The notes under the pieces were generated by a model. That model had not been told where the DNA came from and did no database searches. It saw nothing but the letters and a program-made list of their open reading frames with translations. From assembly GCA_021613535.1 (NCBI GenBank), contig CP075492.1, forward strand, positions 19,902,001 through 19,966,000: DNA of 64,000 bases, read 5' to 3'. Made by a program: the position numbers and the translations under genes. Positions 1 through 64,000 of the stretch are shown piece after piece (the stretch's first letter is position 1; the number at the start of each line of letters is the position of its first letter). The DNA comes from Adineta vaga. Lineage: Eukaryota > Animalia > Rotifera.

Positions 1-3000
1 TTCATTCATATTATCAGAACTTTGAACATAAGCAATTAAATGATCATCACCCCATTTCATCACAATACACACAGAAATAGATGATATGTTAAGTAAACAT
101 CGTTCTATTTCACCAAGTTCAATACGTTGTCCATGTAATTTGATTTGATGATCTTTTCTTCCTTGATAATGAAGAAGACCATTACTATCCCTTTTGACGA
201 GATCACCTGTTCGATAATATATTTCACTATCGATTTCAATAAATGCTTTTGATGTCAAATCATCACGTCCAAGATAGCCAGCAAAGACACCAACTCCTCC
301 TACAAACAATTCAGCTTCTTCATTGATCATCACATTTTGCAAGAATTCATCTAGAACTAGAGTTCGATAATTTGCAAGGGGTGCACCTATGGGAATGCTC
401 TGTATATTGGATGATATGTTGATATCATAGAATGTGCAAGCAATAGTTGTTTCCGCTGGTCCGTATAGATTCCATAGAAGACAGTTTTGCAAATTGATGT
501 TTTTGATTGAATCAATCAATTTAATCGTGAAAGGTTCACCTATAAATGAAAAATCAAATGAGTTAAGATGAAGAAATAACTTCATGTCACATGCTCACCA
601 ATACTACAAAGCGATCGAAGATATGCGAAGCCATCAAACATATTACATAGTTTCACAAAAGCGAAAAAACTCTGTAATAAACTCGGTACAGCATGCATAT
701 ATGTGATTTGTTTATTTCGTAAAACTTCATATAAATAATCAAAATCAATTGTTCCTCTTGGATGAAGCATAACTAATGTGGCACCATGGATTAAAATACC
801 AAGTATTTCTTGAACATGAATATCAAATGAACATCGTGCCATTTGTATAGCTATATCGTATTGATTGAATGAATCAATAAAAGTTAAAGAATCGATACAT
901 TTAACGAAATTCTCATGTCGAACTTGAGCCTACAAAGAAGAAGAGTAAAAACAGTTAAATATTTAAAAAAAAGAAGGAAACAATTAACAAACCGCTTTTG
1001 GTATTCCAGTTGAACCACTTGTAAAGATGATGTAAGCTATGTTATGAGATGTCACTCTTATACTTGATAATTCATCAATATCAACATTATTCTCCATATC
1101 ATTGTTAGTTAATATAGAATCCATATTAACTAAGATAATATTATCATTAAACTTCTCTTTAGTCAATGAATGAACAAGAACAAGACGAGATTGAGTTTGT
1201 TCTATGAGAGAATATAATCGATGTTGTGGATCTCGTGCTGATAATGGACAATAAACACTACCAATCATTTCAATGGCCATTATACCAATAACCTATTCAA
1301 GATCAATATTCATTCTCATTCTCATTCTCATTCTCATTCTCATCAACTACTCACCATTGGTATACTTCTCTCGACACATTGACAAATTATTTCACCTACA
1401 CAGATATGATATTCATTGAGTAGATTCGAAGATAACAATTGAACATAATACAAAAGTTCAGAATATGTCAAAGATTGATCATCTAATTCAACAGCTAACT
1501 TTTGTGGATATATCTTTGCTTTCGAAGCAAACTCATGATGAATACAATTAGTAGTAGTCGAAGAAGAAGGAAATGATATTTGTGTTTGATTTAGAGATTG
1601 TATTAGAAATTGTTCATTTGGTAACAGTAATGATAACTCATAGATTGATGTCTCTTTTCTAGTAGTATGAATAGATGTCGATAAATGATGTAACATTGAA
1701 TGAAATTGATGTGAAATCTTTTCAATTGTCTTCACATTGAATAAATCAAGAGATGCATTGATTGTGCATGAGAGTTCATTCATATCTAGATTATGTTGAT
1801 AACTAACGATAAAATCAAATTTACTCATGATTTCATCTTCACTAATCTTAAGTGACAATGGTACTAAAGAAAGTTGACTATCACCAATTCTTATTTCATT
1901 ATTGTTGTTATATGATATGAATTCAAATGATATGTCGAGAAATGCAGGATGTAATATATTAGGATGTTGATCAAGGATACGTTGAAGTGGAAAATATGAA
2001 TATTTCATACTATTTCTTATCATTTCACTAACATAATCGAGTAGTTGACAAAAAGACCAATGAGAATCTAATTGGCATCGTAATGGAATAGCATTTACAA
2101 ACATACCAATCACTGACTTGAGTTCATCTCTATATCGACCATGTGTATTCATTCCAATGCATAGATCATTTTCTCTATTTGTTAATTTAAATAAGAAGAT
2201 GTAGTAGATTGCAAGAGATAGATGTTCGATGGAATGATTGTGTGCGGATGCATAGGAAAGAAGATGACGTGAAAGATCTTGACCAAAATCAAAAGAAATG
2301 AATGTTCCACGACCTGTTCGATGTTCATTTACAAGACGATATCGATCATATGGTAATGATAAAGATTGATCAAGTTTGCAATCATAAAGAGTATCATGCC
2401 AAAACAGATTTGCGCCACTCATCGGCATTTGTCGTTCAATAACAGCATCTAGATGAAAAAGAAAGAATCGATGAATTAAGAAAGAAATAGAGTTTTAGTT
2501 ACAATCAACATAACGTGGAATAGTATCATCGGTGTTAGATAGTTGACTTGTTGTATATGCTTGATTAAGATCATGAAGAAACACATTCATTGATGGAACA
2601 TCAAAAGTAGCATGATGAAAATTGAAAATAATTACATCTTTGTCAGAGAGAAGATCATTTGAAGAGATGTGTTTGTAGTAAATAAGATGACATCGAAAGA
2701 CAAGACCTTGAGCTAGATGAAAAAGTTGAGGATTACGTTTTTCTTCATGTATTATATTAGTGAGTTGTTGATGTGTTTCATAAGTGCTTTGAATAAATGT
2801 AAATAATGTATTGTTATCATTGTTCGAAGTCATGATTTGTTGCATGAATGAGTTTGTTTCTGTATTAAAGACAAGTGATGTACGAAGTGATTCATGTTTT
2901 GTAAGGATTAGTTGAAGAGCATTGTAGAGTTGTTTAATTGATAGAGTATGTGTTGAGGAGAGATGATAAACAAAAGGCATATTGTAGATTGCTACTTGTG

Positions 3001-3066
3001 GTTTCTCAGGATCAAAACGAATTCGTTCATCAAGCCAAATACGAGCTTGTGCAAATGATGCTGGTG
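1..3066 (-). CDS. NRPS cassette 4 (C-A..., cut by the window edge); A-domain code about DIQHCILIAK
   Basis: Five exons visible; near-identical to cassette 1 from about 2450 to 290 and identical to cassette 2 (16148-16430) over about 283-1. Confidence 0.9.
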
Positions 3067-6000
3067 CTACAATGTGTCATATTGTTATTAATGTGTGTGA
3101 ATGAAAAAAAACAATTTTTGTAAATTGCGGAGTATGATTGTGTATTGACTCTTCACGAGGCATTCCTGATGATGCATTTCAAAAAGTGACAGTGAAATTT
3201 TTTTTATATATTCGTAACTGAATAAACTAGCTTGTTTTTAAATGAAGTCTATAAGATTATGTCACTTTGAATGAGATTTGCTCAGTTTGAGAGATATCAG
3301 AAACATAGAATTTGAGTTTGCAATATGTGGTGAATCCATTTCATCACTTCTATTTCGAACTTAAAATGCGACATTGGTACTCAAACGGCTTCTTGTAAAT
3401 GAAGATAAGCATAGACAAAATTATGCCGAATAGAACCATTATTTGTCAGCTACAGTTCTTCACAGTGAGAGTGAAGTTTCGAGATAGAACTCTCATAAAT
3501 TTCTAAAACTATCTTAAATTGACGACATATGTATTTAGAAAGAAACACTACGATGTAAAATTCATTTTCGTCGCTTGGACCATTTCAATTTACTCGTGAA
3601 ACCATATGAGTAAAAATCAAGGGGAGATCAACGTTACTCCAGTACTCCACTATACTCCATTCGTACACGACGAAGAGAAAACAGTCGATATTCGAGTTTT
3701 CCAGAAAATGTTGGAGTACGAGTGAAGTAAGCGGAGTATTAGAGTAGTTGTTTTTCCCCTTGCATTTCGTACATTACTACAGCATCTTATCATTCGGTCA
3801 ATAATGAATTGGCTAAACGTTTCGTTCGTTCATTTAAACAAAGAATGCTACAAAAACAGCATTTAGGACATATGAACGAATCCATTGCTTTACGTAATGT
3901 GTTAAGATCCTTTCGTTAGTGTCCACATACATCTATTGATTCCTCTTCAGCAAATTCATTATTTCGACATTCAATTCGTACAGAATTTAATATTATGAAA
4001 CTAACTCCATCATCACTACCTACATCATTATAACAACCAAAATTCTCTGTTGGTCGATTAGTGTGGACATTGAAATCTTCACACAATCATCGTCCACAAT
4101 GGGGTAATACCTAATTATTAAACCAATTGGTTCAATGTTATACGAAGTTCGATTATGCAATGGTTAATTATGTAAATGTCACCATAATTAGCTTCGTTCT
4201 TCTTATTCTCCTCAATCAGTGCCATCAACTTAATACAGCTTATCAAGTTATTTAGCAGCTTCTGCATCATCAGTAAAAAGAACTTCAATTACTTTGATTA
4301 CTTCTACATCAAGATGATCTCAACGACATCGACATGCTCGTGTTCGTTATTCTCCTTTGTAATTATTTTGGAACACCTTCGTTTCATGCGTGACTAATAG
4401 TCACCGGTTATATTACGGTTATATATCTACATAGTTTTCTCTTCTTCCCTTGTTACTAATTAACATAGAACTCACGTTCATCTCTCAAAAGCACAAATAC
4501 TATAACAAAGTTCCCGATTTAATTCACTCTTCTAGTGAACAAATTCTGATGTGGACTACCTCCCCATAAATCCAGCTGAATTCTATATTCACTGAGGACC
4601 CATAAGAATCGGATTATTCCCTCTTGGGAATATGCATCAACAAGAACAATACGTTTTGAATTAGAGTAGAAACCTACCTTCATCTACGATATTTGATTGT
4701 CGCTGAAATATAACATTCTTAATTTCTTTAGCTTCCTTTGGCAATATAAGATTGAGTTTCGATATAGTTGCCACACAGGTTTCCACTCCATCCACTATTT
4801 CATTTGATGGAAAAAATTGTTCCAAACAAAATGAAAACCTTTCAGCTATATGTGCAACAGTTCCATCATCAAATAAATCAGAAGAACATATCAAATCAAA
4901 TGATAATCTGTTATTTTTTAACGCTGGATTATAAACAAATGTTAACATAAAATCGAATTTAGCTTTTTCATATGATTTTTCTAATGGTACTTGCTCCAAT
5001 TGTGTATCATTCATCGATAAGTAAGTCTCACCTTCTGACAAAGTGACGAAATCGAACATTGTTTCCAGAAAACCAAGATTAGATTGGTTGAGATGGAAGT
5101 CACTGAGAATATGTTGAAGTGGATAATGAGAATGTTCAAGTATTGATAAACATTTCTCTTGTATATATCTAACAACTTCATTGAATGACCAATGATGATC
5201 AAGTTGAATACGATATGGTAATGTTGACACAAACATTCCTATCATATTATACAATTCAGAACGATATCGATTAGCATTTATAGTACCAACACATAAATCA
5301 GTTTCATTATGTGATAATTTGAATAGAAAGACATAAAATATCGAGAGTCCAAGTTGAAAAAGTGTCAGATGATGTGATGAGGCATAATTTAGAAATGGTG
5401 TACATATAGTATCATTTAATATTATTTGAGTTGTAGAAGCTAAACCAGATTGCTGCTGAATTGATGTACGAGATCGATCATATGGTAATGATAATGAATG
5501 TTGAAAATCACATCCTTGTAGTTGAGAATACCAAAATTCATGAGATAATGTCATATCCATAATATGTTCATGAATAGAATAATCAACGTATTGAAATGGA
5601 TTGTCGTCGACAAAAACTAAATTATTGTCTCGATAAGCAAGAGAAAGATCACGAATAAAGATTGATGTTGATGCACCGTCAAAGAAAGCATGATGAATAG
5701 TAAATAATATTAAATCATCTGCAGTCAACATATCACTTTCTTCATTTGAACTATTATGAGAACGAAGAATATGACAATTAATAACATGTCCTTTTGATAG
5801 ATCAAATAAACCATATTTGTTTAAGATTTTCTTTACAATTTCATTCTTGTCCGTGTTTTCTTTGGAAACATTCACTATTGAAAAGCTATTTGTTTCCGTA
5901 TTATTGATTAAAATACTCAGATCTCGACAATCTTGTGCAATAACACCATTTCGATCAAGATAAAGTGCTGTTCGAAGAATCTTGTGTTTTCTTATGACAG

Positions 6001-9000
6001 ATTGATATGCATGTTGTAATCGTGAAATTGATATATGATCAGTTATCGACGATAAACGATATATAAATGGAATAACATACATATTAGTATTGTCATTTGT
6101 CGAAGATGAAAAACGAATGTGTTCATCTAAGAAAATGCGTTCTTGGGCAAAGGATGCTTTAGCTGAAATGAGATATAGAATGTGATTATTGCAGTATTTT
6201 TCAGATTATACTTTTACCTGTAAGGATATTTAATGAATACCAGCAACCGTCATCGTTACTCAATTTGGAATTCAGAATCTCATGAATAAGCTGTGCATGA
6301 CCGATAACAGTTGGGTATTGAAATAGATCACTAATAGCAATGGAATTTACTTCTAATTGAAATTCTATTTTATACTGATGTAGAAGTTGCATAATAACTA
6401 ATGAATGACCACCAATCGTGAATATGTTTGTATTAATAGAGATCTGTTGTTGTTTTAATACGCCACACCATATACGATGGATAATAGATTGAATTTCACT
6501 TGTTGGTTCTAGCAATTCGTTACCGTCATTAAGATTTATTGAAGAGAGAGAAACGAAATCAGGTAAAGGGAGCTGTTTTCGATCTATTTTTCCATTTGGA
6601 TTTAACGGTAACTTTTCAAGAATAATAAAACAAGATGGAATCATATGTGGAGGTAGATGTGATTGACAATGTTCACGTAACTCATTTTCATTTACGATCG
6701 AACTTTGAACATAAGCGACTAAATGATCTTCACCGCATTTGATGACAACGCAAGTAGATATCGATGTGATACTAAGTAAACATCGTTCAATTTCACCGAG
6801 TTCAATTCTTTGTCCGTGTAATTTGATTTGGTGATCTTTTCTTCCTTGGTAATAGAGAAGACCATTATGGTCTATTTTTACGAGATCACCAGTTCGGTAA
6901 AATTTTTCATCATTAATTTGAAGAAGAACTTTGGATGTTAAATCGATACGGTTAAGATAGCCAGCGAATACACCAGCACCACCAATAAATAGTTCACCTT
7001 GTTGGCCGACGAGCGCATATTGAAAATATATATCCAATACTTTATAATACTCGTTAGGGAGTAATCTACCAAGCGCGATAAGTGATTCACGGCGCGCGGA
7101 ATCGATGCAGTGACAGAAGGAAACAACTGTAGTTTCAGCTGGCGCATATATATTATATAAACCACAGTTGTTGTTAATGTGTTTTAATAAGCGATGAACA
7201 AGTTTGTTTGATATAGGTTCTCCTAGAAATCTTATAAGTACATTCAACACTCTTTCTGTAATTTACTTACCACCAAAACACAGTGATCGTAGCGTCAACA
7301 AAGAATCACCATGTGAACGTTCAATAGCTTCACACAAATAATCCAGGAATGTCGGAACAGGTGCGATACATGTGATTTCTTTAGTTTCGCATATATTCAT
7401 AAAATACAAAAAGTCCATGTTCCCATACGGATGTAACAGCACAAGAGCTGAAGACAAAAATAAGCTACCGATGATTTCCATGACATGCACGTCGTACGTA
7501 GGAGCACATATTTGGGCCATAACATCATTCTTCTGCAACACTCCAGTATTTTGTAAACCTTGAATAAAATTTGAGAAATTTCGGTGTGTGGTTTGAACCT
7601 AAAAAAGCAACAAACTGCAAGCGATATAACACAGTGTGTAAAAAGCATACTGCTTTCGGTATGCCAGTCGAACCACTTGTAAAAATAATGTAAGCTATAT
7701 TATTAGATGATACTGTTATCCTTGAAAGTTTCTCTAGCTTGAAATCACCGCTCAAATCTGTATTAGTCACTGTTTCATCAATATCCAATAAGTTCGTAAT
7801 ATGAGGAATTTTTGTGATAGTAGTTCGATGAACAATAACCAGGTGAGACAGTGTTTGTTGTATAAGAGCATGTAAACGGTCTTTTGGATCTCGAGGTGAT
7901 AATGGACAATATACACCACCTACCATTAAAATTCCCATTATGCCAATCACCTAAATTACAGAAAACTTCCTAAGTCGAAATAATACATACTTATTTAAAG
8001 CCACTTACCATTGATATACTTCTTTCGACGCATTGACAAACAATATCACCAACCTTTACACAACATTTATCCAATAAAGTCAAAGACAACACTTGAACAT
8101 AATATAACAGCTCACAATATGTCAACGATTGTTCATCCAGTTCAACAGCTAACTTTTGTGGATATATCATTGCTTTAGAAACAAATTCATGGTGAATACA
8201 ATTGACAGAAGGAAATGATATTTGTGTATTATTCATTGATTGTAGAAGTAATTGTTCATTTGGTAATGTTAGTGAGAATTCATAGAGTGGTTTACTCAAT
8301 TGACTATGAATACAGGTAGATAACTGATGTAACATTGAATGAAACTGTTGTGAAATCTTATTAACGGTTTCCACATGAAACAAATCCATTGATGCATCGA
8401 TTGTATATGATAGTTTATTCAGATCCGAATTATAATGAAAACTAAGAATAAAATCAAATTTACTCATGACTTCATCTTCGCTAATACAAATTGAATATGG
8501 TGCAAGGATGAGCTCATTATCACCTAGCATTATTTTGTTTGCGTCTTCGCTCGTCATAAATGATGTAAAGTCGAATGACGTGTCAAGAAAAGCAGGATTT
8601 GATACATGAGGATGTTGATCAAGAATACGCTGAAGTGGAAAATATGCATATTTCATACTATTTGTGATCAACACTCGCATCTGATCAGTGAATATATGAA
8701 AGGATGAATGAGGATCAAGTTGACATTGTAGAGGAATAGCGTTTACAAACATTCCAATGATAGATCTCAGTTCATCTCGATATCGTCCGTCTGTGTTCAC
8801 TCCAATGCATAAATCTTTTTCTCCATTGGTTAATTTGAATAAGAAAATGAAGTAAGTGATGAGTGCCAAACATTCAAGTGACATGTTACTTGTCGATGCA
8901 TACAAAAGAAAGTCATGTGAAAGATCTTGTCCAAAATCAAAAGAAGTCGAAGTTCCACGACCAGTTCGATGTTCATTTGAAAGACGATATCGATCATATG

Positions 9001-12000
9001 GTAATGGTAGAGATTGATCAAGTTTACTATCATGTAGAGCATCAAGCCAAAACATTTCTGCACCAGTCATTGGTATTTGTTGTTCGATAGCAGCATCTAA
9101 AAGACAACGACGAGTGATATATGAGAAAGAGAAAAGTGAAATAAATGTGTATATTTACAATCAAGGTAACGTAGATTAGTTTCTTCGTTGTTGTCAAGTA
9201 ATTGACCTGTTGTATATGCTTGATTAAGATCATGAACAAATATATTCATTGATGGGAAATCAAATGAAGCATGATGAAAGTTAAAAATGATTACATCCTT
9301 CTCCGAAAGTAGCATTTCGGAAGAGATCTGTTTGTAATAAAGAAGATGACATCGAAAGACGAGACCGTGAGTGAGATTAAAAAGTTGAGAATTTTGTTTC
9401 TCTTCGTCTATGATATTGTTCAATTGTTCTTGAGTTTCATAAGTACTTTCAATAAATGTAAATAATGTCATGTGATTACTGTTATTAACTTGCACAATTC
9501 GTTGCATCAATATATTTTTATCCTTGTCGAAAATGAATGCAGTATGAAGTGAAAGATGTTTGTTGACAGTGAGATTGAGTGCATGTTGAAGTTGTTTTAC
9601 TGATATAGTATTATTTGGAGAAAGATGATAAATGAAAGACATGTTATAGATTGCTGCTTGTGAATTTTTGGGATCGAATCGCATTTGTTCATCGAGCCAA
9701 ATGCGAGCTTGTGCATAGGATGTTGGTGCTATATTAAATGTAGTATATGTGTGTAATAGTAGAAACATCAAGGATGTAAAAGAGACGATGTAGCATTCTA
9801 TCTACTGATAATTTTATTTGTGGCCGTAGGCGGCGTAGCGTATAGGGTTGAAAAGCTTGTGCCCCACTTGAATTTTGCTCCTGTAGGCTCGGTCTCATCT
9901 GAATTACAGCTGTAAAGTTTGATCACAGGGTTGGTTGTTTAGCTGGACAGTTCTATGTTCTCGCAGCATTTAACACTATGCATAGGTTTTTGTGTACTCA
10001 AAAAGTGAGTACACTACTAAAATCGGTCTGTATGTCCGGCCGTTTATCCGATAACTTTCGAAAGGAGAGTCCGATTGAGCTGAAATTTTCTACACAGTTT
10101 AGACTCAGTAATATCTCAGTCGAGTTCGAAGATGAGACCGATCGGTCAAGAATTGCTTGAGTTCTCGTAAAAATACTGAAAACTGGCCAGACCATCACTG
10201 AGGAGGAGTACGGGGATTTGTTGCAAAAATTTTTTTCCGTCATTTTCACAGGATATATCGGTCTGTTGGACTTCATGTGCATTACCTTTGTGTCCTCAAG
10301 TCCTGAGAGTGAATGTGGGTGATATAAGTGATCTGGGTGAAATTTCACCCAGATGGTTTTATGATGGGTAAAATCTCCCAACTTTATATGGTGGTTTCCT
10401 AGGCACGATATAATGTCGAGAACATGTTGGAACCTGAGTTGAAACTATAGATAGGGGTTATTTGAGGGACCTGGGTGAAATTTTACCCAAGTGGTTCCGT
10501 GATAGATAACAGCGTCAAACTTTCCATGGTGCTTTCCTAGGTCTAGAAAAAGATCAACAGAATGTTGGTATACAAGTACGGGGGTAGGGAGGGATGACCT
10601 GGGTGAAATCTCACCCAGGTGGTTTTGTGATAGATAATGTCATCGAACTTTCTACGGTGCTTTCCTAGGTCTAGAAAAAGGTCAAGAGAGTGTTGGCAGA
10701 CGAGCAGGGGGTAACAGGGGTGCAGAATATGGTCGTGTGCGCCGACGCGTGTTGGGGAAAAGTTTAGGCGTTGAAATATTTTTAAATGTAATATTAGCAG
10801 CAATATTTTTTCTGTAGATAAGAAAATAAGTTTTGTATGTAGATTATCTAATTTGTTTACTCATATAGAATTATATAACTGTTTGTCTTTTTGTTTCTTA
10901 TGACAATTAATATGTTCTAGCATAAGCATACATAAACTCTGTGTTTTAATTTGTTTTATTTTTTTCTATCATTTAACCCTTCGTCGTTGTCGTGGGGTCC
11001 AAGCGGACCCACCACTTGTCTATATCTTCTGACAAGACTGCAGTTGACGTTTTGGTTTGCTATTTTTGAATAGTGCATACTAACCCCAGCCCATATAGAA
11101 AGATTGGATTTCCTCTCTGCTGTGCCCAAGTAATTATAAGACTACAACTGAAGGCTCAAAATGAGGACAGCTACGAAGGGTTAAGTAACGATATAAAATA
11201 TCTCGTGCGGTTTATATTGTTGTTATACTTAAAATTTGTTTTCGTTATTTCTAACATGTATAAAAACAATCTAAAGCATGGCGATGTATAAAGATATATA
11301 CAAGAAACAAGACAAAAAGAAAATATTCAGGAGAAAAAAAATGAATATTAAATGCGAAGTCAGGAGAGTGATAAACGTAAATCATAAACTTTGCTTGCCC
11401 TTCTTTTATTCTTTACGTTGTTTATTCAAACTTTCAGTCGTTTAAAGTTCTCTCAGTTATAAAAATTGGAAATGTTTCCAAGTAAAGAACAAGCACCACG
11501 GTGACCAGAATTAGTCGATGATTGATGGAACTGATTGTGTTTTATGATTATCTTATTTTGGGCACAGTAGTTTCTTTTCTTCCTACATTTCTTTTTAAAA
11601 ATATATATTTGAAAACAGAACATTTATTTTTATTTTGATATTGAGAGAAATTTTCAATCAATTTTTCTTCGTTGAGGGAAATTTTTCGTTTTAACGACAA
11701 ATTCTGCAGCCCTAGGGGTAGGGAGAGGTAACCTGAGGAAAATTTCACCAAGGTAGTTGCGTGATAGATAAAGTCATCAAACTTTTCATCGTGCTTTCCT
11801 AGGTCTAGAAAATGGTCAAGAGAGTGTTAGCGTCAGCAGGGTGAGTGTGAAGAATCAGTGAGAGAACGATGCGACATATGATATGAAGAAATAAAGGAAA
11901 GCGTAACTCCATCAGCGCTAAAGCCTCTTCTATCAAAAAACATCACAATGAGGGTCAGCAGGGAGACCTTTTGTGGCTTTCAAGCAAGTATTCTTTGTAT

Positions 12001-31671: not shown

Positions 31672-32558
31672 ATTTTGTGATGAATAAATAGAGAAAAATA
31701 TCTATTTATAATGCAAGAAAACCTATTGTAATCTACAAGTTGTAAAACAAATAGAAAAATTATATATAAATGATAAAATGAGCTAATAACTGAAGTGAGA
31801 TATTGTAAAAACATCAAAAAGATGATTTTGTGGAGACACATGCATTACGAGCACAAATGAAGGATCAATTCTTCTTTTTCGAAATAAAGGACATCGCTAT
31901 ACATAAAACTGATTTTTTTCTTTCATCTTTCTTAAACATGTCATAATTTGCTATTCGCAACGGAACTTTGAGCGACTTGTCAAGACTTCGAGAAACTAAA
32001 TTATATATATTTTTCACAGATATCTATACACATATCATATAACAACATTTCACAAATACATAAGAAAAACAAATGAGACATTATAATATTATATTAAATA
32101 GTAAGAAAAAGAACATGTTATTAATATATCTAATGACTAAATACGAAAAATATTCATAAACAAAAGTATGTTGTGAAACAAATATCATATTATAATAGAT
32201 ACACTTAGAATACAAAATTGGTTAGAATGTTTGTGGTTACTTAAGATAGAATGAAATATCTCTTAAATAATGTATCGTATAAAAAACTTATGTTCTTATG
32301 ACATAAGTCAGTATTTCATCTAATCTTATCAGTTATAAAGTTCGAGTTTTTGAATGTTTAAAGTCTCTGTAAAATGTATAATAAAACATAGTCCTTATCA
32401 GGCCTAAGCTATTTACTTTCGAGTTTTCAAATTTAATATTCTATAAATGTCTCTATAGTGTGATATTTGATAAATGTTAGAGTTAGTATATGAAAACAAA
32501 ATCTCAACTGACCCAATCATTAATGTCTAAAAAGTAATAATTGTTAATGTTTGTGATT

Positions 32559-35500
32559 CTAACCATCCATGAGAAGCAATTCAACATCATTAATTACAAA
32601 ATGATCCTTGAGTTGTCGTATCATTTCACGAGCAATGACTTCTTCTTGTTTATTTCGAATTGTCATCAATTGATAAGGTCCACGTGGCTGAATACGACGC
32701 ATTTGTGCAATCATCTCTCGAGCACAAGTAGAGATACTTGTTGCCGATAGATTTGAAGGTATTTGAATAACATAAGTGGAAGCCCGTGCTTTTTGAGTTT
32801 TTTGTCCATCTATATCGTTGATAAATAGTGCAAACAACGACTCATCTTTATTGGTAGTCGACTTCTCTGCAATACAAAATCTAACAAGACTATCATGTTG
32901 ATGTCTACGTTGAAGACAAATGATATTTTCTGTGCCAGTATACATAGACGACATATTGGATGATATAGTATCATTTTCTTTGACAATATCAATATTCATA
33001 TCTTGTTCTTTATTAGCCGATGATACAACTTCATAACGTTCATTTAGTTTTTTATGAATAACTGTTGCAATTGTTTCAATAGAAAATCCTTGAAGAAGAT
33101 CAACTAATGGTATAAAAATACCAGTCTCTTGTCCTAACCAATTGTATAATGAAAGTGCTGCTAATGAATCCATACCTTGACTAACGAGTGAACGATCAAT
33201 TAAAATACGATCAACATTAGTTGCCCCTAGAAGTCTTGATACAGCTGCTTGAGTTCGTTCAATAATAGTTTCTTTCTGATTGAAATTCGAGTCAGTTGTA
33301 ATATTAACTCCTGATGATGTTGTTAAGGCATTTGTAAGATTCATAGCTGCATATCGTTCTTCTACTATTTTACGTAAATGAAATGTCGGTAACTTCTGAT
33401 GTCTTTGATACAAAGTCTGCCAATTAGCAGCAAAAACAACAGGACATGGACAATTTTTTGATTTGCTAGAAATTGTTCGATCAATTCAAAAACGACTACT
33501 GTTGGTACTAATTCAAAACCTTGTGTAACCTGTAAACTTATCAGTGCATCTCGATGTCGATGAAACATACCAGCACCACTTACAGCTGGTAAACCGACTG
33601 AAAGAGCTGGTATATGGAGTTTTGTCACACGATAATGAGCTAGAGCATCAAGAAACTGATTACCAGCATTATAACTGGCAGCTGCTAATTCAAGTAAATG
33701 ATTTCGAATTGATGAGAACATAATGAAAAAATGAATCGGGGCATGAGTAAGTTGTGTCACTTGATGAAGTATCCAAGCACCACGAACTTTAGCTGCTAAA
33801 ACACGTGTCAGATGTTCTTGTGTTAAATTAGCTAAAGAACGATCCTCTGCAACAACAGCAGTATGAATAATACCACGAACAGGATGAGAAGTTCTATTTA
33901 GATTTTCAATAAGTTGATGAACTTGATTAAAATTTGTTACATCAACTTGAACAACATCAACATAAGCATTATATGTCTTAGATATTTGTTTTAATTTTAA
34001 CCACTCATTATATTGTGGATCAGAAGGTTGTTCAAGTTCAATTAATGTTCGACGACTCATAAGTGTTATATATTTAACACCACGCTTTTCTATCATCCAA
34101 CGAGACATTGTCAATCCAAGACCACCAAAACCACCAGAAATTAAAATTGTTCCTTGTTGACAAACTTCCACAGGAAACATAATATCATTATCTAAAATTA
34201 CAATTCGATAGAAAAGAAAATGAAAGAATAAATAAATCTGAATTACCTGTCGATAAATGATCAGTAGACGATTTGTGAGTTATATTTAATGGTTCATTAG
34301 AGTTAGTTAATCGAACAGCAGATTTGCCCATAGCTTGACCACTATTACATCTCATACACGCTTCTATGACTTGGGATGGTTCATAGATAACTGTTGGTTC
34401 AATTGGTTTTAATTTACCTTGTACAAACAAATCAACCATTTCTTGTAACATAACAGTACAAATATCTTGCTGTTTGTCAGAAAGTGAAATCAAATCAATA
34501 ACATGCATACTACAATCAGAACGTAAATCAAACAGTGATAAAGCAGTCTTATCAAAAACATCTCGTTTGCCTCATTCAACAAAATGGCCATGAGAAGCAA
34601 GTAATTTAATGGATTGTTTAAGAAGAGGACCAGACAACGAATTAATAACGACATCAACACCATTAGGTAGAATAGTTAGTACATCATTAACAAAAGAAGC
34701 ATCTCGACTATTGAATACATATTCAACATTTAAACGTTCACGAAGAAAACGTCGTTTTTCTTCACTTCCAGCTGTGGCTATAACACGAGCACCAATATAT
34801 TGACAATATTGAATACAAATTTGACCAGCACCACCTGTTGCAGCATGAATGAGAACAGTTTGACCAGCTCGTAAATGAACGCGATATTTAAGGGAATAGA
34901 TTACTGTTAAACATACAACAGGCATAACTGATAATTGTTCATCGGTGAAAAGACATTCAGGTGGAATACATACAATTTGTGATGAATCAAGAACAATATG
35001 TGAATGTAATGAACCACGATCCGATATACCAACAACATGATTACCGGGTTGAAACTTCGTTGTAGAACATGCACGTACAATAATGCCAAAAAAATCTGAA
35101 CCAGGTTCTGTATCTCGATCAACATGTGGTTGATCTTGATCAAGCTGTGCAAAAGTACGTGTATGTGGATAAAGACCTCGTGCTTTAAGTACATCACGAA
35201 AGTTAATTCCAACACAATGAACACGAATCTCAACTTACCTGGTGATAATTCTCTTACTCTTTTATCACTAGTCCATGTTAAATCATTAAGAAAACGAGAT
35301 GGAGGAACAAGAAGACGAAACGGATATTGATCAGCGTCTCTTTGAGGATTAATACAAATTTGTTGTTGTTGTTGGAATTTAGATTTTTCTTCTTCATTTT
35401 CTTCTTGTTTTTCTAACATTTCATAATGCCATGTCAGATGTTTGATTGATTGATTTTGATTTGTTTCGAGACGAAGAACAACTTCATCCATTGTATTTGA

Positions 35501-38500
35501 ATATCGACAAGTAACAAGATATTGTGCTAAAGCGTGAGCAAGTGTTTCTTCGTCCAATAAAGAAGATGAAGATGATTGAAGATCAATAAGTTTCAATCGA
35601 TGTTGATCATATTCAATCATCAGACTACGTGTAAGACCGATGAGAGGTGATGCAATTATATTACAATTAGATTCGATATTCAACTGACCATGTCGTGTAA
35701 TAACGAACACAAATGGACGAAAGTTAGGAGATGTTGCTTGGATTAGTTGAAGAAGCTGAATAAATGAGCCTAAAATAGATTCTTCATGTTGTTTAAATAC
35801 CAAATCACTGTTGTCAGCGTCTATGCAAGTTTGTTCATATGACCAAGCAAAAACAACATATAGTTGCTTATATTTACTCATCATCATTTGAATTGTAGAA
35901 CGAATTATTTCCATTTTTGAGTTACACATATCAAAAAATCGAACGTTAGAACATGGCAAAAGTGATGCTGTAGTATGTCCAAGACTGTGAAGATCATTTT
36001 TGGCGAAAAATAGCCATGCTTGATGTTTTCTTTCATCAAGTGTCTTTAATATTTCGTGAGATGTTGTCTTTTGAAAGATAATTAATGCACTTTCAGGTTG
36101 ATTCAATATTGTTTCAATACTCGTAGACCCACCTAATTCTCTTAAAGTTGTAGTCCATTGATGAACATTATTTAATACACGAACATTATCCGATAATGAC
36201 CACCATTGATCAAGTAAACCGAAGATTAGATCAAAATAAAGAGGGACATCAATTAATTCGAGTAATAGAAGAAGGCCATTAGGGATAAGTAGACGACGAA
36301 GATCGATTAGAGATTTCATCAAATCCTGGCTTCCTTGCAATTCATTTGCAGCAAACACAACATCAAACGATTCGACTGGTATCTTTTCTAGAATTTCACT
36401 GTTGAACAAGTCATATGTTTGATCATATGTAATAGACAAATGAGTTTGATCAGCTAAATGTGTTTGAAATAGTTGTTCAGCGTGTGTGAGTTGCACCGGA
36501 TCTGATTCCATATAATGTAGATCGATCCATAGACTTGTTTGCTGTGATAAGTTAACTAATAGATGAAGAACAGGTAGAGCATCCAAATGTTCACCGCTGG
36601 CGATCCAAAATATACGTAATCGACGGTTAGTAAGAGATTCACAACATATTTGATCGTATTGTTGCTGGAGTTGTTGACCTATTGCATGGAATATTCTTTG
36701 TGTTTTATTTGCACTAATAATACTTTTTATTTGTTGTAATGTTTGTTCAGTTTCATCATTCCCCAGAAATACATCTATTCCACTTTGTTGTCCACTAAAA
36801 ACTTCTTTTAGATGTAAACCATAATTGTTCATTGAGATTAACAGTGGCTTGAGACGAGGAAAACGATTGAATAAATTCATAAGACGAAGTTGCGTTGAAT
36901 GCAATGTCACTTGCTCGGATATATGTGAGGTAAGAGATTGACACGTATTGAACAACAAAAGATACTGGCGATCGATGGCATTCACATCAAGTCCTTCTAT
37001 GGCCATTTGAGCATAACAAGCAGCCAATTCATTGAACGGTTCAATGGATTCGATTAAATCATGATTAGTAATAGTGTTAATCGCATTTTCAAGAATTTGC
37101 TCAGGCGATGGAAGTAGATCAGCTATACTTTTTATTATCGGTAAATTAAGCCATGTTCTTTTCATGCAATAATCCTTTATAATTATATTTAACTGTTCAC
37201 CATGATCTGCGTTAGGTAACTCAATAGCTGTATTTAATTTATCAAAAATAGATTTTTCTAATGTCCATCGACCAGATCGTACACCTTGAACTCGTTGAAC
37301 AGTAAGACCTTCAAATTTACACATGATGTCTGCTGACAGAGAGTTTTTGTCAGTATTTGAAAGAACCATTAAATCACAAGTATATGTTCGTTCTTGACTC
37401 AAACCGTAAACACTGTCATGAAAATTACCACGCATCTCAATATTGGAATGAGATATGTTATTATTGTCTGTATAACTTACAAATTTTTGAATACCAACTG
37501 GAAGAAATGTTGCATTCGCACCAGGTAATAAAGCTAAGAGTGGATGAAAACAAGCATCAAGTAATGATGGATGAAGTAGATAATAAGAAGAATGATCACT
37601 GATTTTACTAAGAGCATTTGAAATTTGAGCTGTAACTGTTGTTGATGTACCTTGTAAGAAGTGCATGTTTTGAAATGAAGGTCCGTATTGATAACCTCTT
37701 GTTGATAAATGACTATAGACATTTGATACATCATATGCCGACCACGTTTGATCGTGAACTTTATTAGTAGTAATTACTGTGGTTGATTTGTGTTGAGTAC
37801 TATCTATAGTAATTCGACCATGAGCATGTAAAATGAATTCATTCAGAGAATATTCACTAAGAGTCTGTTGATCAAGAAAAGAATCAATGAAATCAGTACT
37901 AGCCATACCTAATGAACGCATACAGTCTGGACCGACTGTCGACCATGGTCGACTGTAAATGAACCATTCACGTGTTGACTTCATAATTTGTGTAAATACT
38001 TCTGTCAATTCATGTTCACTAAGAAGTAGTGGTTTTACAAATTTACTTTCTTCTAAAATAATTAAAGATTGTTTATTATTATCTGATGATAGAAATAATT
38101 GTCGACAACCAGCTGTAACCATTTCAAGTAGTGCAACAGCAGGATATAGAATAGTATCTTGAATTTTATGGTCTTTTAAAAATATATATTTTGGTAAATT
38201 AATATTAATAAGACTTCTCCATGTAGCATTTGTTTGTCCAGTTAATTGACGAACACCAAGTAATGGATGAGTAGGAATACGATTAGCTAGACGTTTTATA
38301 GCTGCATCCTTTGATTCATACCAACATGGAGTTAGATTAAATGTATAGAGAGGAAAATCATCAAAGAATGCTGCATCTTCTTTCGAAGGTAAAATATATC
38401 GCATATGAAAATATTGTTTCCACATATCAGATGATGTTATTAATTGTGCTAGACTTGTCAGTAATGTTATTTGTTCATTTTCTTTTCGTTTCAATGTTGG

Positions 38501-41268
38501 AAGAATAAGGGGCTGTTGATTGGTTGATTCGTAACACTCTCGAATAGATGTGGCCAAGACTGGATGTGGCGAAATTTCAAGAAAAATAGTTGCATCATCA
38601 TTTTGTGCAATAGATGTCATTGCATCACAAAATCGAACCGTTTCTCGTACATTTGTCCACCAATAATGTGCATCGACTGGCATTTCATCACTTAATTCAC
38701 CTCCAATAACACTTGAATAGAGACGAGCTTGGGCACATTTTGGATCAAACATTTGTTGTGGATCTTTCAAAGGAAGTCCTCGAATGTCTTTGAGTGATGA
38801 CAGCAGTTCTTTTTCGATATCAAATCGATCCATTTGATGACAATGAAATGCATTTTCAATACGAAGACGGGTTTTAAAAACATTTGGATAAAATGTTGAA
38901 AGAATTCGTTCTAATTCATCAATAGTCTTTTCATCTCCACTCAAGGTGACAGAACGAGGACTATTTACAACAGCAATACACACAAGATGTTCAATACTTT
39001 TAAGAAGTTTGGCTTGTACTTCTTCTTTACTCATCGAAACAGCTAACATTCGACCACCTTGTCTTGTATTACGATTTTGTAAACGTGATCGATGATAAAC
39101 AACACGAACAGCTTCTTCTAAGGTGAGGCGACCGGCAACAAATGCAGCTGCTTGATCTCCAGCACTATGTGATATAATACTTGAAGGATAAATATGCCAT
39201 GAAACAAGTAATGCTGCTAAGGCAACTTGAATAGCAAATAATGTTGGTTGAGCAATATTGGTATCATTAATACGAGATTCTTGTTCAGTTTTTTTTCCAA
39301 TTAATTCGTCTAATAATCGCCATTCACCATTGTTAATTTTACTCATTTCACTATCAATTAATTGTATCCATCGAGTAAAAACAGGTTCACTTTCGTATAA
39401 TTGTCTACCCATAGCCCACCATTGTGGACCTTGTCCACTAAAAACAAAACATATTTTTGATAGTGGTACTGTTGGGCGCATAGCTATTGAAAGGCCTAAT
39501 ATTATCTGTTCAGAGAGAAAAGCATTGATTTGTTTTTGAAGTTCTTGACGATTTGCAAATACAAAAATAGCTAAATGTGTATAACTAATTGTCCGTTTAA
39601 GAAGAAGTTGTTGAGAGACACGTTGAAGGAAAGCATAATCATCATTCATGTCATCCGGAAGAGGTCTTTTTTGTAACCATTGATTGAATTGTTTTACTTG
39701 ACCATTAAGAGATGTACGACTTTTTGCTAAGGAATAATAAAAGTTAATTTTTTATGATAGAAAAACATTCCCACTACCTACTTGAGAAAATAATGACGAA
39801 GTATTGTTTATTTTCTATTTGATGATACCCGTTAATATGATCAATGACACATCCATTAACAAATGAGTTTTTTACATTTGGTTGATATTCTTCCACAATT
39901 GCATGTACATTGTTACCGCCCATGCCAAATGAATTTATACCTATAGCTATAGGATCAGTGTTAGTGGAAGAAGGAAATGGTACGGAATGTCGAACAACAT
40001 GAAGATTATAGCGTTGTGCTTCGATCCGAGAATTAAGAGATGTGGATTGCATATTTGGTGGAATAGTTCGATGATGCATACACAGAGCAACTTTGATTAA
40101 TCCAGCAATACCGGCTGCACCTTCTGTGTGTCCTAAATTACTTTTAACAGAACCAATTAATAATGGAGGATCAAGTTGTGATCGATTAAAAAATCGACCT
40201 AGACAATTCGCTTCTATAGGATCCCCTACTGGTGTACCAGTACCATGTGCTTCAACATAGAAAATGCGTCGAGGATCAAATTCTGTCCGTTTGTAAATAT
40301 TTGTAAGTAGACGTATTTGTCCAGCAGCAGATGGAACAACAAAATTACTTTTATCTTCACTTCCATCATGATTGCTGAGTACATCTCGAAGAACACAATA
40401 AATACGATCGCCATCACGTACGGCGTCACTCAGTCGTTTCAACAGTATAAGACCAAGACCCTCACCTAAAATAATTGATTATTTTGATATGTGTGTGAAT
40501 ATATTTCTCACCTTTAGCATAACCATTAGCATCAGCACTAAATGATCGACTTCTTCCATCAGGTGATTGAGCACCGATAGTTGAGCTATAAAAAATACTT
40601 TCTGGTGCGAAGACACCATTTACACCACCACATACAGCCATATTCGCTTCCTTTGTACGAAGAGTTTGTACAGCCATATGCACAGCTTCTAATGATGATG
40701 AACAAGCCACATCTAATGAGACGTTAGGACCTTGAAGATTAAAATGATATGATAATCGAGCGGCAGCATTATATAATAAACTATTAGGCCCATGAAATCT
40801 TGATCGATATTCGGGTTCCATTCGAAGTGATGTGTAAGCATGATCCGTAGAGAATTGTCCGATGTGTACAGATGTTTGTGAACCATGCATTTTTTCAATA
40901 GAATAGCCAGCATCGTCGAGTAAATGGACAAATTTTAGCATTAATAATCGATGACAGGGATCCATACTGCCTGCTTCTGCATCCGATAGTCCAAAGAAAC
41001 TGGCTTCAAAGGTGTCCCATTGATTATTCGAGAGGAAATATCCTCTACGCACGAGTTTCTCACGAAATTGTTGATTATTATCCATGTTGAACATATGAAC
41101 GCAATATGAATCAATATCGAGTCGATCACGGGGCATTGCGCTTCCGACATCTCGACTCTCATCCAATGCATTCCATAAATCGTCAGCACAATGAATATCA
41201 CCAGCAAATTCACATGACATACCTATAATAGCCACTGGCTCTAGAAGACTACTGAGTGTTGACGACAT
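32559..41268 (-). CDS. Type I reducing polyketide synthase (KS-AT-DH-pseudoMT-ER-KR-ACP-truncated TE) with two frameshifts and one in-frame stop; possibly a pseudogene
   Basis: KS DVACSSS, EAHGTGT and KSNLGHTE; AT FSGQGPQW, SHSAG and NAFH; DH DHKIQDTILYP and LLDACFH; ER VGINFRDVL and LIHAATGGAG; KR ISGGFGGLG and YNAGN; ACP QGMDSL. Introns at 40466-40511, 39727-39781 and 34192-34246. Lesions: 1-nt deletion near 35235-35236, TGA at 34572-34574, 1-nt deletion in the run at 33454-33459. Confidence 0.9.
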
Positions 41269-48051: not shown

Positions 48052-48515
48052 AGGAGTCATTGAAATGGAAAAAGAAAGGAATAAATGTTGCTGGAGGATC
48101 GATATGGGAAAATCACTCAGATCGGTTTTTTTTCAGAAGGAATTTCTATTGATGATACAAATAATAATCGTATTATGAAATGGAAAATTGGTTCAAATCA
48201 TGGTAAAATTGTTGCAAGTAGAAATTTTCGTGAATCTGATCTTAATCAATTGGATAATTCGACTTTTATTTTAGTTAATAATGATTATTTAATTTATATA
48301 TCAGATACAGAAAATCATCGAATAATGAAATGGAAAAAAGATACTAAAGAAAGAGTTATTTTTGTTGATGGAAAAGATCAAAACACATTCTATAGACCTA
48401 AAGGAATAGTTATGGATCGATTATATATTGCAGAAACATCTTATTGTCGAATAATTCGATGGTATGAATAAGGAAATGAGAAACCTGAAATTATTATTGG
48501 TGGAATTGGACCAGG
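48052..48515 (+). pseudogene. NHL-repeat protein pseudogene
   Basis: KWKKKGINVAGG, then a frameshift, then NNRIMKW...YISDTENHRIMKW...LYIAE...RIIRWYE* GNEKPEIIIGG. A possible upstream transmembrane exon lies near 47750-47905. Confidence 0.75.
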
Positions 48516-60058: not shown

Positions 60059-60600
60059 TTAAGCACAAATTACTTCTGAATAACCACTAGGACAGCTTTT
60101 GCATAAACAGTTGTTGACGAATGTACCATCGTAATCAGTAAAAGGGACACAAACACCAGTCCCACAGTTCTTATAACCTGTAGAAATATAAGATGTAAAA
60201 TACATAAATGACTTTCTGTTAATCATCTAATGAAGAAGACGTTCAGTGGAAGCTTTCGAAATGTATCAAATCTTTTGTTTTGGTATCTGATTTTTCGTAA
60301 CTCTTGACAATTCTAAGTGATTCAATTTTGTGCACCGTCTCTTTCATTCTATGTTTAGAAGAAAGCTGTCTGGGGTGTAACAAGTCGAGGAGAAGAAGTA
60401 AAATAACAAAAAATTAGTATTTTTCCTTACCAACACATTTGCCGTAACAGTTGTTACTGTTACATGTTCGAGATTGACCTTGAACAACTAAAAGACGAAT
60501 GATACAGGCAACAATCATAAATCGAAACGATTTAATACATACCAATAACAAAGCTAAATATCAAGAAAAATGAAATTAGTGCTTGAAGTAGAAGACGCAT
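60059..60600 (-). CDS. Secreted CS-alpha-beta defensin-like peptide of ASABF type (77 aa, 3 exons)
   Basis: Exons 60600-60543, 60487-60431 and 60177-60059 with GT-AG introns of 55 and 253 bp give MRLLLQALISFFLIFSFVIVVQG-QSRTCNSNNCYGKCVGYKNCGTGVCVPFTDYDGTFVNNCLCKSCPSGYSEVICA*. Confidence 0.82.
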
Positions 60601-63182: not shown

Positions 63183-64000
63183 ACTTGGTAATCCGGTTAA
63201 TATTTGGTTTGGCCTGGCTCTGTTAACGCTCGAGCAAGTACTTCTTATTATGGGTCGGTAGAACCGCAAGATAAGGGATAGTCCAAAGTCGTTGTGCAAG
63301 GCGTCAGTCGAATATATAATCTGAAAAAGTGTCTTCATTGAAAGATAAAAGATATTATGCAGTGAAACGAGCGACTGACAACATGTAATATATACATCGA
63401 CACTCAGAGAAACCATATTGGAATCAGCGGTAGTGCGTTATAATTATCGCTGGTATTGATTAATCATTACTCAAAGCTATTCATAAGCAAAGGGTCCGAA
63501 AAATGTCCTAATGTTTGCAGCTTCTCCGTTCATAATATTACCACTACTCTAATTACCGAGTCGTTAACATTACTGAACATAATACAAAGAAGACATCTAG
63601 AATGATATGAATAGATAGAGGGAGTGGGTTCAGGGCTTCTGTTGATGAAAAATGTGATTTGCTGTGTGTGAGATGACGTTCTATGGTATATTGCAAGACT
63701 AAGCGGTTATTTTTCATATAACTCACTCTATCTCATCCTCTCTTTCGGCTCAGTCGAATACATTGTTATAGGGGGAGTCATTCATGCATTCAGTGATTTT
63801 GTAAGGGATGCAGTCATTTAAAACGTGAATACTTGTTCACTCTGTGTTCTTTTTCTGTGTGAGAAAAATCTTCTTTGTGAAATTTAATAAATGTTTATAT
63901 TCCATGATATTACACTCGGAAGTACTTACATGATAATATAAGAAAAGGAAATAAAGGTATTCCAGCTAGAAGCTATACAATTATGATAAGTATTAGTGCA

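Follow-up and report, generated by a model that had tools for sequence, protein, structure and literature searches.

Assembly lines of the PKS/NRPS kind are rare in animals. The nematode nemamide system, PKS-1/NRPS-1, likewise pairs a PKS gene with an NRPS gene, and its PKS domains have been reported as FAS-derived. Bdelloid rotifers carry about 40 PKS/NRPS lines per haploid genome, the condensation (C) domains of which form a clade of their own without significant matches in other animals. Fungal highly reducing PKSs and PKS-NRPS hybrids, such as LovB and PsoA, follow the order KS-AT-DH-MT-ER-KR-ACP, normally with an intact ER. A canonical linear NRPS possesses one C domain per module (C-A-T) with the motif HHxxxDG, and it ends in a TE, R or C(T) domain. 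Pls (epsilon-poly-L-lysine synthetase) and PosA, by comparison, are single-module A-T polymerases that end in a membrane and left-handed beta-helix domain (TIGR02353; PMC10522769).

The window analyzed here, a stretch of 64,000 nucleotides, lies on chromosome 3 of Adineta vaga (CP075492.1, offset 19,902,000; the chromosome record itself matches). The PKS-NRPS locus in it corresponds ORF by ORF to region 3.8 of Nowell et al. 2024 (PMC11258130, Suppl. Data 9): the CDS coordinates of that region equal the window ORFs plus 19,902,000, and chromosome coordinates, strand and ORF lengths agree (for instance, 30088-31671 is 19932088-19933671). The region is annotated there as minus strand, with "2 frameshifts, 1 stop codon", 16,259 aa and NRPS_term. 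The existence of cluster 3.8 is not news, because the cluster and its defects are already in this published list. The catalogue gives neither a spliced model nor a product or expression for 3.8 and assumes co-translation (the 16,259-aa estimate); it classes some 10 of its 40 clusters as defective and offers assembly errors as a possible cause (PMC11258130). Rows 3.6-3.8 are displaced in its summary sheet. What we add is that the PKS lesions are real and copy-specific, that the PKS transcript ends ahead of the NRPS, and that the assembly shows two further, putative frameshifts in the NRPS. A. vaga cluster 5.2 on chromosome 5 (AVAG|g48151) shares the layout, with one reducing PKS followed by a C domain, tandem C domains and NRPS_term; it has fewer modules, is listed as intact and is a PKS-NRPS hybrid induced by the fungal pathogen. 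Identity of our locus with this induced cluster was rejected, as g48151 maps uniquely to 5.2; an antifungal role is therefore not established for 3.8. Induced clusters of this family are almost silent at baseline.

Both genes lie on the minus strand, 887 nt apart, with domain E-values that reach 1e-50, far past chance level, which confirms the intron-bearing PKS and NRPS pair that an earlier note, made from the DNA letters, had placed on one strand 0.9 kb apart. That note had also read the pair as a domesticated cluster in an apparent animal genome, and the pair is indeed animal-integrated and of the bdelloid type. The locus sits within a rotifer chromosome of 20.35 Mb, in a subtelomeric position about 0.4 Mb from its end, at host-like GC, near a spliced LDLa-EGF-7TM receptor gene of animal type, and its synteny with Adineta steineri is kept. 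A fungal, protist or bacterial contaminant, for which the microbial type of the domains could speak, is refuted by these observations and retains practically no probability. The top named homologues come from Adineta and Rotaria, and the next nearest are microbial rather than animal (by similarity, not by a tree). The linkage of both genes recurs in a related genome: in A. steineri (loci L010 and L011) the C0 and pre-A C domains start 828 nt after the PKS, so that the order of PKS, spacer and starter C is intact, and the downstream NRPS is visible only to the second C domain in the assemblies examined. The orthologous PKS, CAF1008153.1 (P0377), has 2,832 aa in an intact frame, and is 63-81% identical to the window PKS across all domains. 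With its downstream condensation gene, it resembles cluster 3.8 in the stub-like TE, the inactive MT, the length of the spacer and the motif of C0. P0377 emerged from a representative-sequence search that returned mostly multi-KS bacterial proteins. The Rotaria loci L002, L003, L005-L007 and L009 hold PKS fragments, with no NRPS found within reach; locus L004 stops 250 nt beyond its PKS.

The PKS starts at ATG 41,268, stops at 32,559-61 and comprises four exons (41268-40512, 40465-39782, 39726-34247, 34191-32559), separated by three GT-AG introns of 46, 55 and 55 nt, of which that at 34,192-34,246 was observed spliced in two RNA runs. Database searches were run exon by exon, and the joined spliced proteins, with X at the NRPS break, served only for local counting and motif reading. 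KS, AT, DH, KR and ACP were recognized by Pfam and the ER by NCBIfam:

32559-41268, minus strand: highly reducing type I PKS, KS-AT-DH-pseudoMT-ER-KR-ACP-truncated TE, broken in the window copy
40047-41241, minus strand: KS, Cys-His-His triad motifs present
38435-39448, minus strand: AT, active-site Ser motif present
37349-38269, minus strand: DH, a profile match whose motif carries Asp at the usual Gly
36150-36625, minus strand: pseudo-methyltransferase, which resembles PKS C-MT structures and has lost the glycine-rich SAM motif, as has its A. steineri counterpart
34250-35234, minus strand: ER, frameshifted and interrupted by a premature stop codon in the window copy
33581-34153, minus strand: KR (Pfam)
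33063-33251, minus strand: ACP, phosphopantetheine Ser present
32562-33035, minus strand: truncated TE-like tail without the nucleophile motif

At the level of the family, this single module thus possesses KS, AT, DH, ER, KR and ACP with catalytic motifs. LovB is the second-best match of the KS in the PDB; cluster 3.8 shares the domain order of LovB and PsoA and differs from them in its dead MT, its TE stub and its separate eight-module NRPS gene. An origin of the KS from animal FAS, or from a FAS-derived protein, was rejected, since FAS reaches 92 bits while microbial PKSs of bacterial and fungal type score 178 and 159, and the TE is a stub. As far as sequence comparison tells, the nemamide and bdelloid systems are of independent origin, because the bdelloid C clade is separate and the KS is far from FAS, whereas a derivation from FAS has been reported for the domains of the nematode PKS. 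Recent decay of TE and MT was likewise rejected: the TE stub and the dead MT are common to intact homologues, in which the stub tail is equally present (63% and 49% identity over ACP and tail). A metagenome scan with the ACP-TE tail found no relative.

Three lesions interrupt the window copy of this gene:

35235-35238, minus strand: 1-nt deletion (frameshift), which also yields a consensus in-phase splice donor
34572-34574, minus strand: TGA at the Trp of homologues, a premature stop in the ER
33453-33459, minus strand: 1-nt deletion (frameshift) in an A run between KR and ACP

At both frameshifts, the missing bases are present in the RNA-type runs X11 and X12, which would suit the view that the defects are assembly errors and the haplotype is intact. 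However, an independent DNA run of 2015 (X4), with long contigs at a depth of 110-170, agrees with the window at each lesion, without gap or change. The RNA contigs, for their part, stem from a copy that is 1-6% divergent from the window and lacks the two frameshifts. That the RNA derives from another PKS copy follows from dozens of other sites that differ from the window. The lesions (two frameshifts and a stop) are therefore real, and for the PKS the assembly-error view is rejected; applied to the whole cluster, it is quite improbable. The PKS of the assembled haplotype is a recent pseudogene, its amino-acid decay being no worse than that of the expressed copy. The second copy was found transcribed, at low level, and spliced in two studies; the simplest view is that it represents the other allele, located on the homologous chromosome.

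The first deletion also raises the question whether the ER has been turned into an intron, leaving a functional PKS without ER and, as its product, an unsaturated chain: the donor it creates (35,238) is perfect and matches the phase of the acceptor at 34,192, and splicing between them would remove two of the three lesions. Because of the frameshift at 33,453, however, translation would still end ahead of the ACP (the first stop is codon 2,251), and the joint was not found in the RNA, which comes from the other copy. We consider a functional ER-less enzyme very unlikely, although the spliced form may have been a passing stage, and hold to the reading of a pseudogene beside an expressed copy.

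Between the two genes lies the following element, its length of 887 nt resulting from the NRPS ATG at 31,671:

31672-32558, no strand assigned: spacer with the PKS 3' UTR, covered by RNA to about 32,302

Three blocks of it are conserved with the 828-nt spacer of A. steineri. Contigs from three RNA runs pass unspliced from the ACP across the PKS stop to about 32,302, and this shows that the PKS transcript ends separately, in the spacer. The same contigs bear on whether PKS and NRPS form one hybrid polypeptide through splicing from the GT at 32,561 into C0, as a GT just ahead of the PKS stop and an AG closely upstream of the NRPS start would permit. Besides the unspliced RNA, the expressed copy reads TGG at the PKS stop and stops five codons further on, homologues terminate there too, and in A. 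steineri the PKS and the downstream condensation gene are annotated apart; we rejected this fusion, which keeps very little probability, in favor of a PKS transcript of its own.

The NRPS begins at ATG 31,671 on the minus strand and covers, up to the window edge, 24 exons and 6,260 codons, with 23 GT-AG introns and the domain order C-[C-A-T-C]x3-C-A; A and T domains with core motifs are present in each module. The gene runs about 29 kb beyond the window start (modules 4-8 and a Pls-type terminal domain), and the NRPS DNA examined there lies beyond chr3 19,892,299-19,902,000, the part with the end of module 4 and module 5. The total is eight modules, where the earlier note had read a peptide of at least four residues. 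Its statement that the introns are short is borne out by all three PKS introns and by 19 NRPS introns (48-63 nt), and fails for four long, repeat-filled ones (1,569, 4,250, 4,382 and 1,611 nt). The parts within the window are:

30102-31671, minus strand: exon 1, which encodes the starter condensation domain C0; A. steineri has the same motif, HHIAFDL
28533-30101, minus strand: long phase-1 intron from C0 to module 1 (splice model)
23441-28532, minus strand: module 1, C(pre-A)-A-T-C(post-T), Ser-like code
25376-25379, minus strand: A10 motif of module 1, with a single surplus base, a putative frameshift in the assembly, read from the sequence
19191-23440, minus strand: long intron that separates two tandem C domains and contains inverted-repeat (MITE-like) elements
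14111-19190, minus strand: module 2 (domain matches)
16469-17122, minus strand: specificity subdomain of the module 2 A domain, swapped: it is about 63% identical, its flanks 97-100%
9729-14110, minus strand: long intron that separates two tandem C domains and contains dispersed and palindromic repeats
4678-9728, minus strand: module 3, which diverges from the other modules (about 75% nt identity)
3067-4677, minus strand: long intron between tandem C domains (splice model)
1-3066, minus strand: C-A part of module 4, the gene continuing past the window start

Near-identical modules are thus set apart by a swapped specificity subdomain; the substrate codes, with Ser predicted for modules 1 and 7, are extrapolated from distant bacterial domains. 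A second NRPS frameshift in the assembly falls in module 6, outside the window (chr3:19,891,547). Both indels are single bases in short A runs inside near-identical repeats, where polishing fails, and for these two the assembly-error explanation is about evenly balanced. No A. vaga protein spanning the module-1 frameshift was found, the best matches reaching 60-76%.

These NRPS defects, together with the confirmed PKS lesions, could also mean that no part of the cluster functions in A. vaga any longer and that it is a subtelomeric duplicate in decay, its PKS showing residual transcription only. In the co-expression check, RNA contigs of three runs were found on the PKS only and none covered NRPS exon 1, such contigs indicating presence and not absence; the share of clusters listed as defective agrees with this reading as well. 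Yet the remaining NRPS codons are open, the splice sites are canonical and dN/dS between modules is 0.25-0.53. Moreover, a PKS copy free of the frameshifts is transcribed and spliced, the window copy has not decayed further than it in amino acids, and induced clusters of the family are themselves almost silent at baseline. We regard a dead cluster as rather unlikely.

Each NRPS module departs from the canonical rule in carrying two C domains of distinct types, with phase-1 introns at their borders and 35-37% identity between the types. The post-T domain keeps HHxxxDG and the pre-A domain has HHxxxD followed by a bulky residue: the motif Gly occurs in 102 of 107 post-T homologue motifs, and Phe or Val in all nine pre-A ones. 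The catalytic assignment is not clean, because C0, the first pre-A C and the post-T C of module 7 lack this Gly. In NRPSs, the place after T and before the next C-A (T-X-C-A) is the standard position of an E domain. The post-T C occupies exactly this place, and the pre-A C retains His-His and Asp in every copy under purifying selection; accordingly, the post-T C could be a tailoring domain, a convergent epimerase, with the pre-A C making the bond and a lipopeptide rich in D-amino acids as the outcome. Against this speak the complete HHxxxDG, the best PDB matches of the post-T C, which are the condensation domains of AB3403, TycC, Txo2 and LgrA (weak, E about 1e-18), an E-domain profile that stays below threshold on the paralogue g48151, and the published antiSMASH calls, all of which are LCL (PMC11258130). 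An epimerase role thus seems doubtful, and we prefer bond formation by the post-T C.

The terminal TE or R domain sought by the earlier note is replaced by a domain homologous to the end of Pls and PosA. It aligns to TIGR02353 from model position 47 to 695 (E 1e-30 and 1e-12) at 106 + 47 bits, below the family cut-off of 423, and its coding part holds five hydrophobic segments. Other than in Pls and PosA, it caps an eight-module line with internal C domains.

Altogether, we think it probable that cluster 3.8 belongs to a family of split PKS and NRPS assembly lines that is old, bdelloid-wide and of microbial origin, with a pseudogene and a second copy as described above, and that it works in the following way. 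Iterative chain building is inferred from the single PKS module, which would use malonyl units to build a reduced, unmethylated fatty-acyl chain on the ACP. As the TE is a stub, this chain would stay on the ACP until the starter C0 accepts it in trans and joins it to the first amino acid (Ser-like code). The peptide would then be lengthened by eight NRPS modules, the canonical post-T C most likely making the bond while the pre-A C would mainly maintain the C-A platform, and the Pls-type membrane and beta-helix domain may free the product at the membrane via acyl transfer. Judged from this domain content, the product is likely an N-acyl octapeptide, probably defensive; the literature searched held no product of a bdelloid NRPS. 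Duplication, gene conversion and subdomain swaps may increase the number and variety of modules, aided by same-phase introns at the domain borders. Far more tentatively, we speculate that bdelloids possess an assembly-line grammar of their own, composed of a stand-alone reducing PKS with a stub TE, transfer of its chain in trans to a starter C, paired C domains of split role, Pls-type release and a reshuffling of modules through same-phase introns and swaps of specificity subdomains, of which 3.8 would be an allele-polymorphic example, one PKS copy dead and one live, that makes an N-acyl octapeptide.

Paired-C modules and a Pls-type end on a multimodular line depart from bacterial rules in a way that can be tested. 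The read data further indicate that at least some clusters listed as defective are truly broken copies beside an expressed one and not assembly errors, and such pairs of broken and expressed copies bear on the turnover of chemical defences in an asexual animal.

Reading all six frames and scanning the exons one by one for domains places a PKS and an NRPS in the same orientation on the minus strand. Database searches were made per exon; the joined spliced model entered local scripts alone, with an X at the break. The two genes and their lesions are as follows:

41,268 to 32,559, minus strand: PKS gene, starting at its ATG; four exons, GT-AG introns of 46, 55 and 55 nt
31,671 to the window edge, minus strand: NRPS gene, its ATG 887 nt downstream of the PKS; 24 exons, 6,260 codons up to that edge
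about 35,235, minus strand: 1-nt deletion in the PKS, frameshift
34,572-74, minus strand: TGA in the PKS where homologues carry Trp, premature stop
33,453, minus strand: 1-nt deletion in the PKS, frameshift before the ACP
25,376-79, minus strand: one extra base in the A10 motif of NRPS module 1; exon of 1,006 nt versus 1,005 in modules 2 and 3
752 of L001, the chromosome 3 piece past the window start (chr3:19,891,547): module 6 has lost one nucleotide from its first exon, a lesion without its own entry in the list of Nowell et al.

The 887-nt gap between two minus-strand genes bears out the earlier note, which had placed them head-to-tail 0.9 kb apart, and the codon count agrees with its NRPS of more than 6,000 aa. 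The short introns that it described are found in the PKS (46-55 nt) and at 19 NRPS positions (48-63 nt), but four further NRPS introns span 1.6-4.4 kb and carry dispersed and inverted repeats. Apart from these long introns and from the frame breaks in the PKS and in NRPS module 1, its description stands. The PKS domains are ordered KS-AT-DH-MT-like-ER-KR-ACP, followed by a short tail; the NRPS reads C0-[C-A-T-C]x3-C-A within the window, C0 being the starter condensation domain.

One NRPS intron holds a MITE-like element (19,343-19,791) with 181-nt inverted arms that are 87% complementary, and a smaller one lies at 23,094-23,272. A 557-nt repeat occurs in two different long introns (11,881-12,437 and 21,672-22,228, 87% identical), with related pieces at ~10,000-10,180 and 20,066-20,247, and repeats of ~130 nt, each with a near-palindrome of 20-24 nt, are present at 10,317-10,713 and 11,715-11,841. 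The first and second long introns have three homologous blocks in common (71-83%; 20,511-21,671 and 29,223-29,750), a remnant of shared origin that insertions later broke up.

KS, C and A exons have their named homologues in Adineta and Rotaria; together with the placement on chromosome 3, ~0.4 Mb from its end, and the receptor gene 13 kb away, these proteins uphold an animal origin over contamination. The neighbouring genes are:

53,916-58,857, plus strand: spliced gene for a 7TM rhodopsin-type receptor with LDLa repeats and EGF; very AT-rich, GC3 0.08
48,085-48,468, plus strand: NHL-repeat fragment
60,059-60,600, minus strand: small Cys-rich, defensin-like peptide gene; three short exons, GT-AG introns, signal peptide; last exon without a Pfam match
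61,794-63,416, minus strand: intronless FGGY carbohydrate kinase; GC 0.42, GC3 0.43 versus a background of 0.30; a candidate for a younger horizontal transfer

The cluster is real and animal, and its coordinates and main defects are already catalogued: the CDS coordinates of region3.8 (A. vaga chromosome 3, minus strand) equal the window ORFs plus 19,902,000, so that 30,088-31,671 corresponds to 19,932,088-19,933,671 (Supplementary Data 9, PMC11258130). The window accordingly spans CP075492.1:19,902,001-19,966,000. Region3.8 is annotated with "2 frameshifts, 1 stop codon", 16,259 aa and NRPS_term (Nowell et al., 2024, PMC11258130). In the summary sheet of Supplementary Data 9 the lengths and flags of 3.6-3.8 are shifted relative to the detailed sheet, the 16,259 aa belonging to 3.8. 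Such clusters number ~40 in A. vaga, where the PKS-then-C order recurs in six others, 3.1, 3.2, 4.3, 5.2, 6.6 and 6.7 (Nowell et al., 2024, PMC11258130), and dozens per bdelloid species (Suring et al., 2023, PMC10531068). Identity with the pathogen-induced model g48151 was rejected, as this model maps to cluster 5.2 and not to 3.8.

The linkage is retained in a related genome. Adineta steineri keeps an intact PKS orthologue (2,832 aa, 63-81% identical by domain); 828 nt further on comes a C0 with 63% identity and an unchanged motif, and beyond it an intron and the C domain preceding A (pre-A C). Three blocks of the spacer align between the species. The MT region, which matches structures of PKS methyltransferases, no longer has the glycine-rich SAM motif in either species. 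The post-ACP tail is weakly similar to the start of a thioesterase (E 0.7), with no nucleophile motif in any of the three homologues examined. Since the KS scores 178 bits against a bacterial PKS and 159 against LovB versus 92 against FAS, derivation from FAS was rejected by similarity. At another A. steineri locus (L012, 2,378-13,311), a paralogous PKS has two genes directly upstream on its own strand, one of C-A type and one with hexapeptide and methyltransferase matches. Rotaria loci L002, L003, L007 and L009 hold lone KS first exons, in two cases ~9 kb from the next exon, which are possibly decayed or intron-expanded copies.

The PKS lesions are real, because contigs of the 2015 DNA run X4, whose sample and study differ from those of the likely source run, agree with the window gap-free across these sites. 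Three further runs were classed as RNA by behaviour, with the 55-nt intron spliced in two and PKS-only coverage in all. Their long contigs diverge by ~1-6% from the window, and in two of the three the missing base is present at both frameshifts. The X4 contigs break at 34,317/34,318, exactly where the RNA starts to differ, which suggests that the second PKS copy is present in that DNA too. The simplest reading of this copy is an allele; a close paralogue is the alternative. Many of the 36 listed differences between window and expressed copy are synonymous. At the sites that a homologue can polarise, the window does not come out as more derived than the expressed copy (6 against 3), so the PKS was broken recently. 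In the expressed copy the terminal TAG of the window is replaced by TGG, and its stop lies five codons further on, at the point where homologues also end. RNA-type contigs continue unspliced beyond the PKS stop to ~32,302, and none in the three runs covers NRPS exon 1; the separate PKS 3' end is established, as are the anatomy, the linkage and the lesions. The deletion at ~35,235 creates a perfect in-phase splice donor that could permit skipping of the ER, although the deletion at 33,453 would still remove the ACP; no such joint was seen in the RNA-type contigs. The NRPS frame is otherwise open in the window, and both its indels, in modules 1 and 6, sit in short A runs within repeats and could be consensus errors. 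A wholly dead cluster is one of two main rivals to the working assembly line proposed below.

The pre-A C domains and those following the carrier (post-T C) form two families with 35-37% mutual identity and 27-30% identity to C0. The post-T type keeps HHxxxDG in 102 of 107 homologue motifs, whereas every pre-A copy seen has Val, Phe or Tyr in place of the motif Gly; the other main rival takes the post-T C for an epimerase. Known bacterial tandem C domains are confined to exceptional cases like icosalide module 3 (PMC10510592). The module layout of 3.8 also occurs in L008, another bdelloid-like contig, with a reductase end. The post-T C of module 7 (L001 9,914) is divergent (HHAATDR, ~75% nucleotide identity to the others), and the C preceding the last module is of a different type. 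Domains of either C type are preceded by a phase-1 intron, always at the same position, and the post-T C domains are single exons made up of whole codons (1,509, 1,509 and 1,485 nt), which permits in-frame duplication or exchange of the units.

Modules 1, 2, 4, 6, 7 and 8 are 99.5-100% identical over ~1.4-2 kb, introns included; in module 2 identity falls to ~63% at 17,122-16,469, from motif A3 to about A6, which holds the specificity code, and module 6 has a similar swap. Between diverged module parts dN/dS is 0.25-0.53. Modules 4, 2 and 1 share, in one corresponding small intron, a 6-nt microsatellite (1,310-1,343; 17,440-17,467; 26,782-26,809) that differs by one unit between copies and marks recent duplication or conversion of modules. 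A-domain codes were read by motif position, at positions presumed from GrsA: DIQHCSLIDK, Ser-like, in modules 1 and 7, DIQHCILIAK in 4 and 8, DVMACGIVVK in 3 and, approximately, DVLQCSIINK in 2 and DIQSLGMITK in 6. The best structural matches of the module 1 A domain include Txo1, Txo2, FscH and EntF, which we take to be Ser-activating; the predicted Ser is the one call deemed worth testing.

Modules 6-8 lie on L001 (19,866,319-19,892,298). The piece holds no TE or R domain at the NRPS end, where the earlier note would place one; instead, the last carrier is followed by a domain of ~700 aa whose match to TIGR02353, the Pls/PosA terminal domain, covers most of that model (E 1e-30 and 1e-12 for its two exons), with scores below the family cut-off. 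This domain also has hexapeptide beta-helix matches and hydrophobic segments. The PosA domain has been modelled as paired membrane helices beneath three left-handed beta-helices, acyltransferase-like (PMC10522769). Where the earlier note gave at least four residues, eight carrier domains are listed for 3.8 (Supplementary Data 9, PMC11258130).

We propose that the PKS would work iteratively to build a reduced acyl chain, which would stay bound to the ACP owing to the stub TE, and that C0 would pass it in trans to residue one. The line may then run through eight elongations, one C of each pair doing the work, before the Pls-type domain releases an N-acyl octapeptide at a membrane. The pseudogenisation of one PKS copy, the split transcripts, the two C types in pairs and the subdomain swaps are refinements of a known system. 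The putative octapeptide would probably serve in defence, if cluster 5.2, the pathogen-induced PKS-NRPS of A. vaga, is taken as the analogue.
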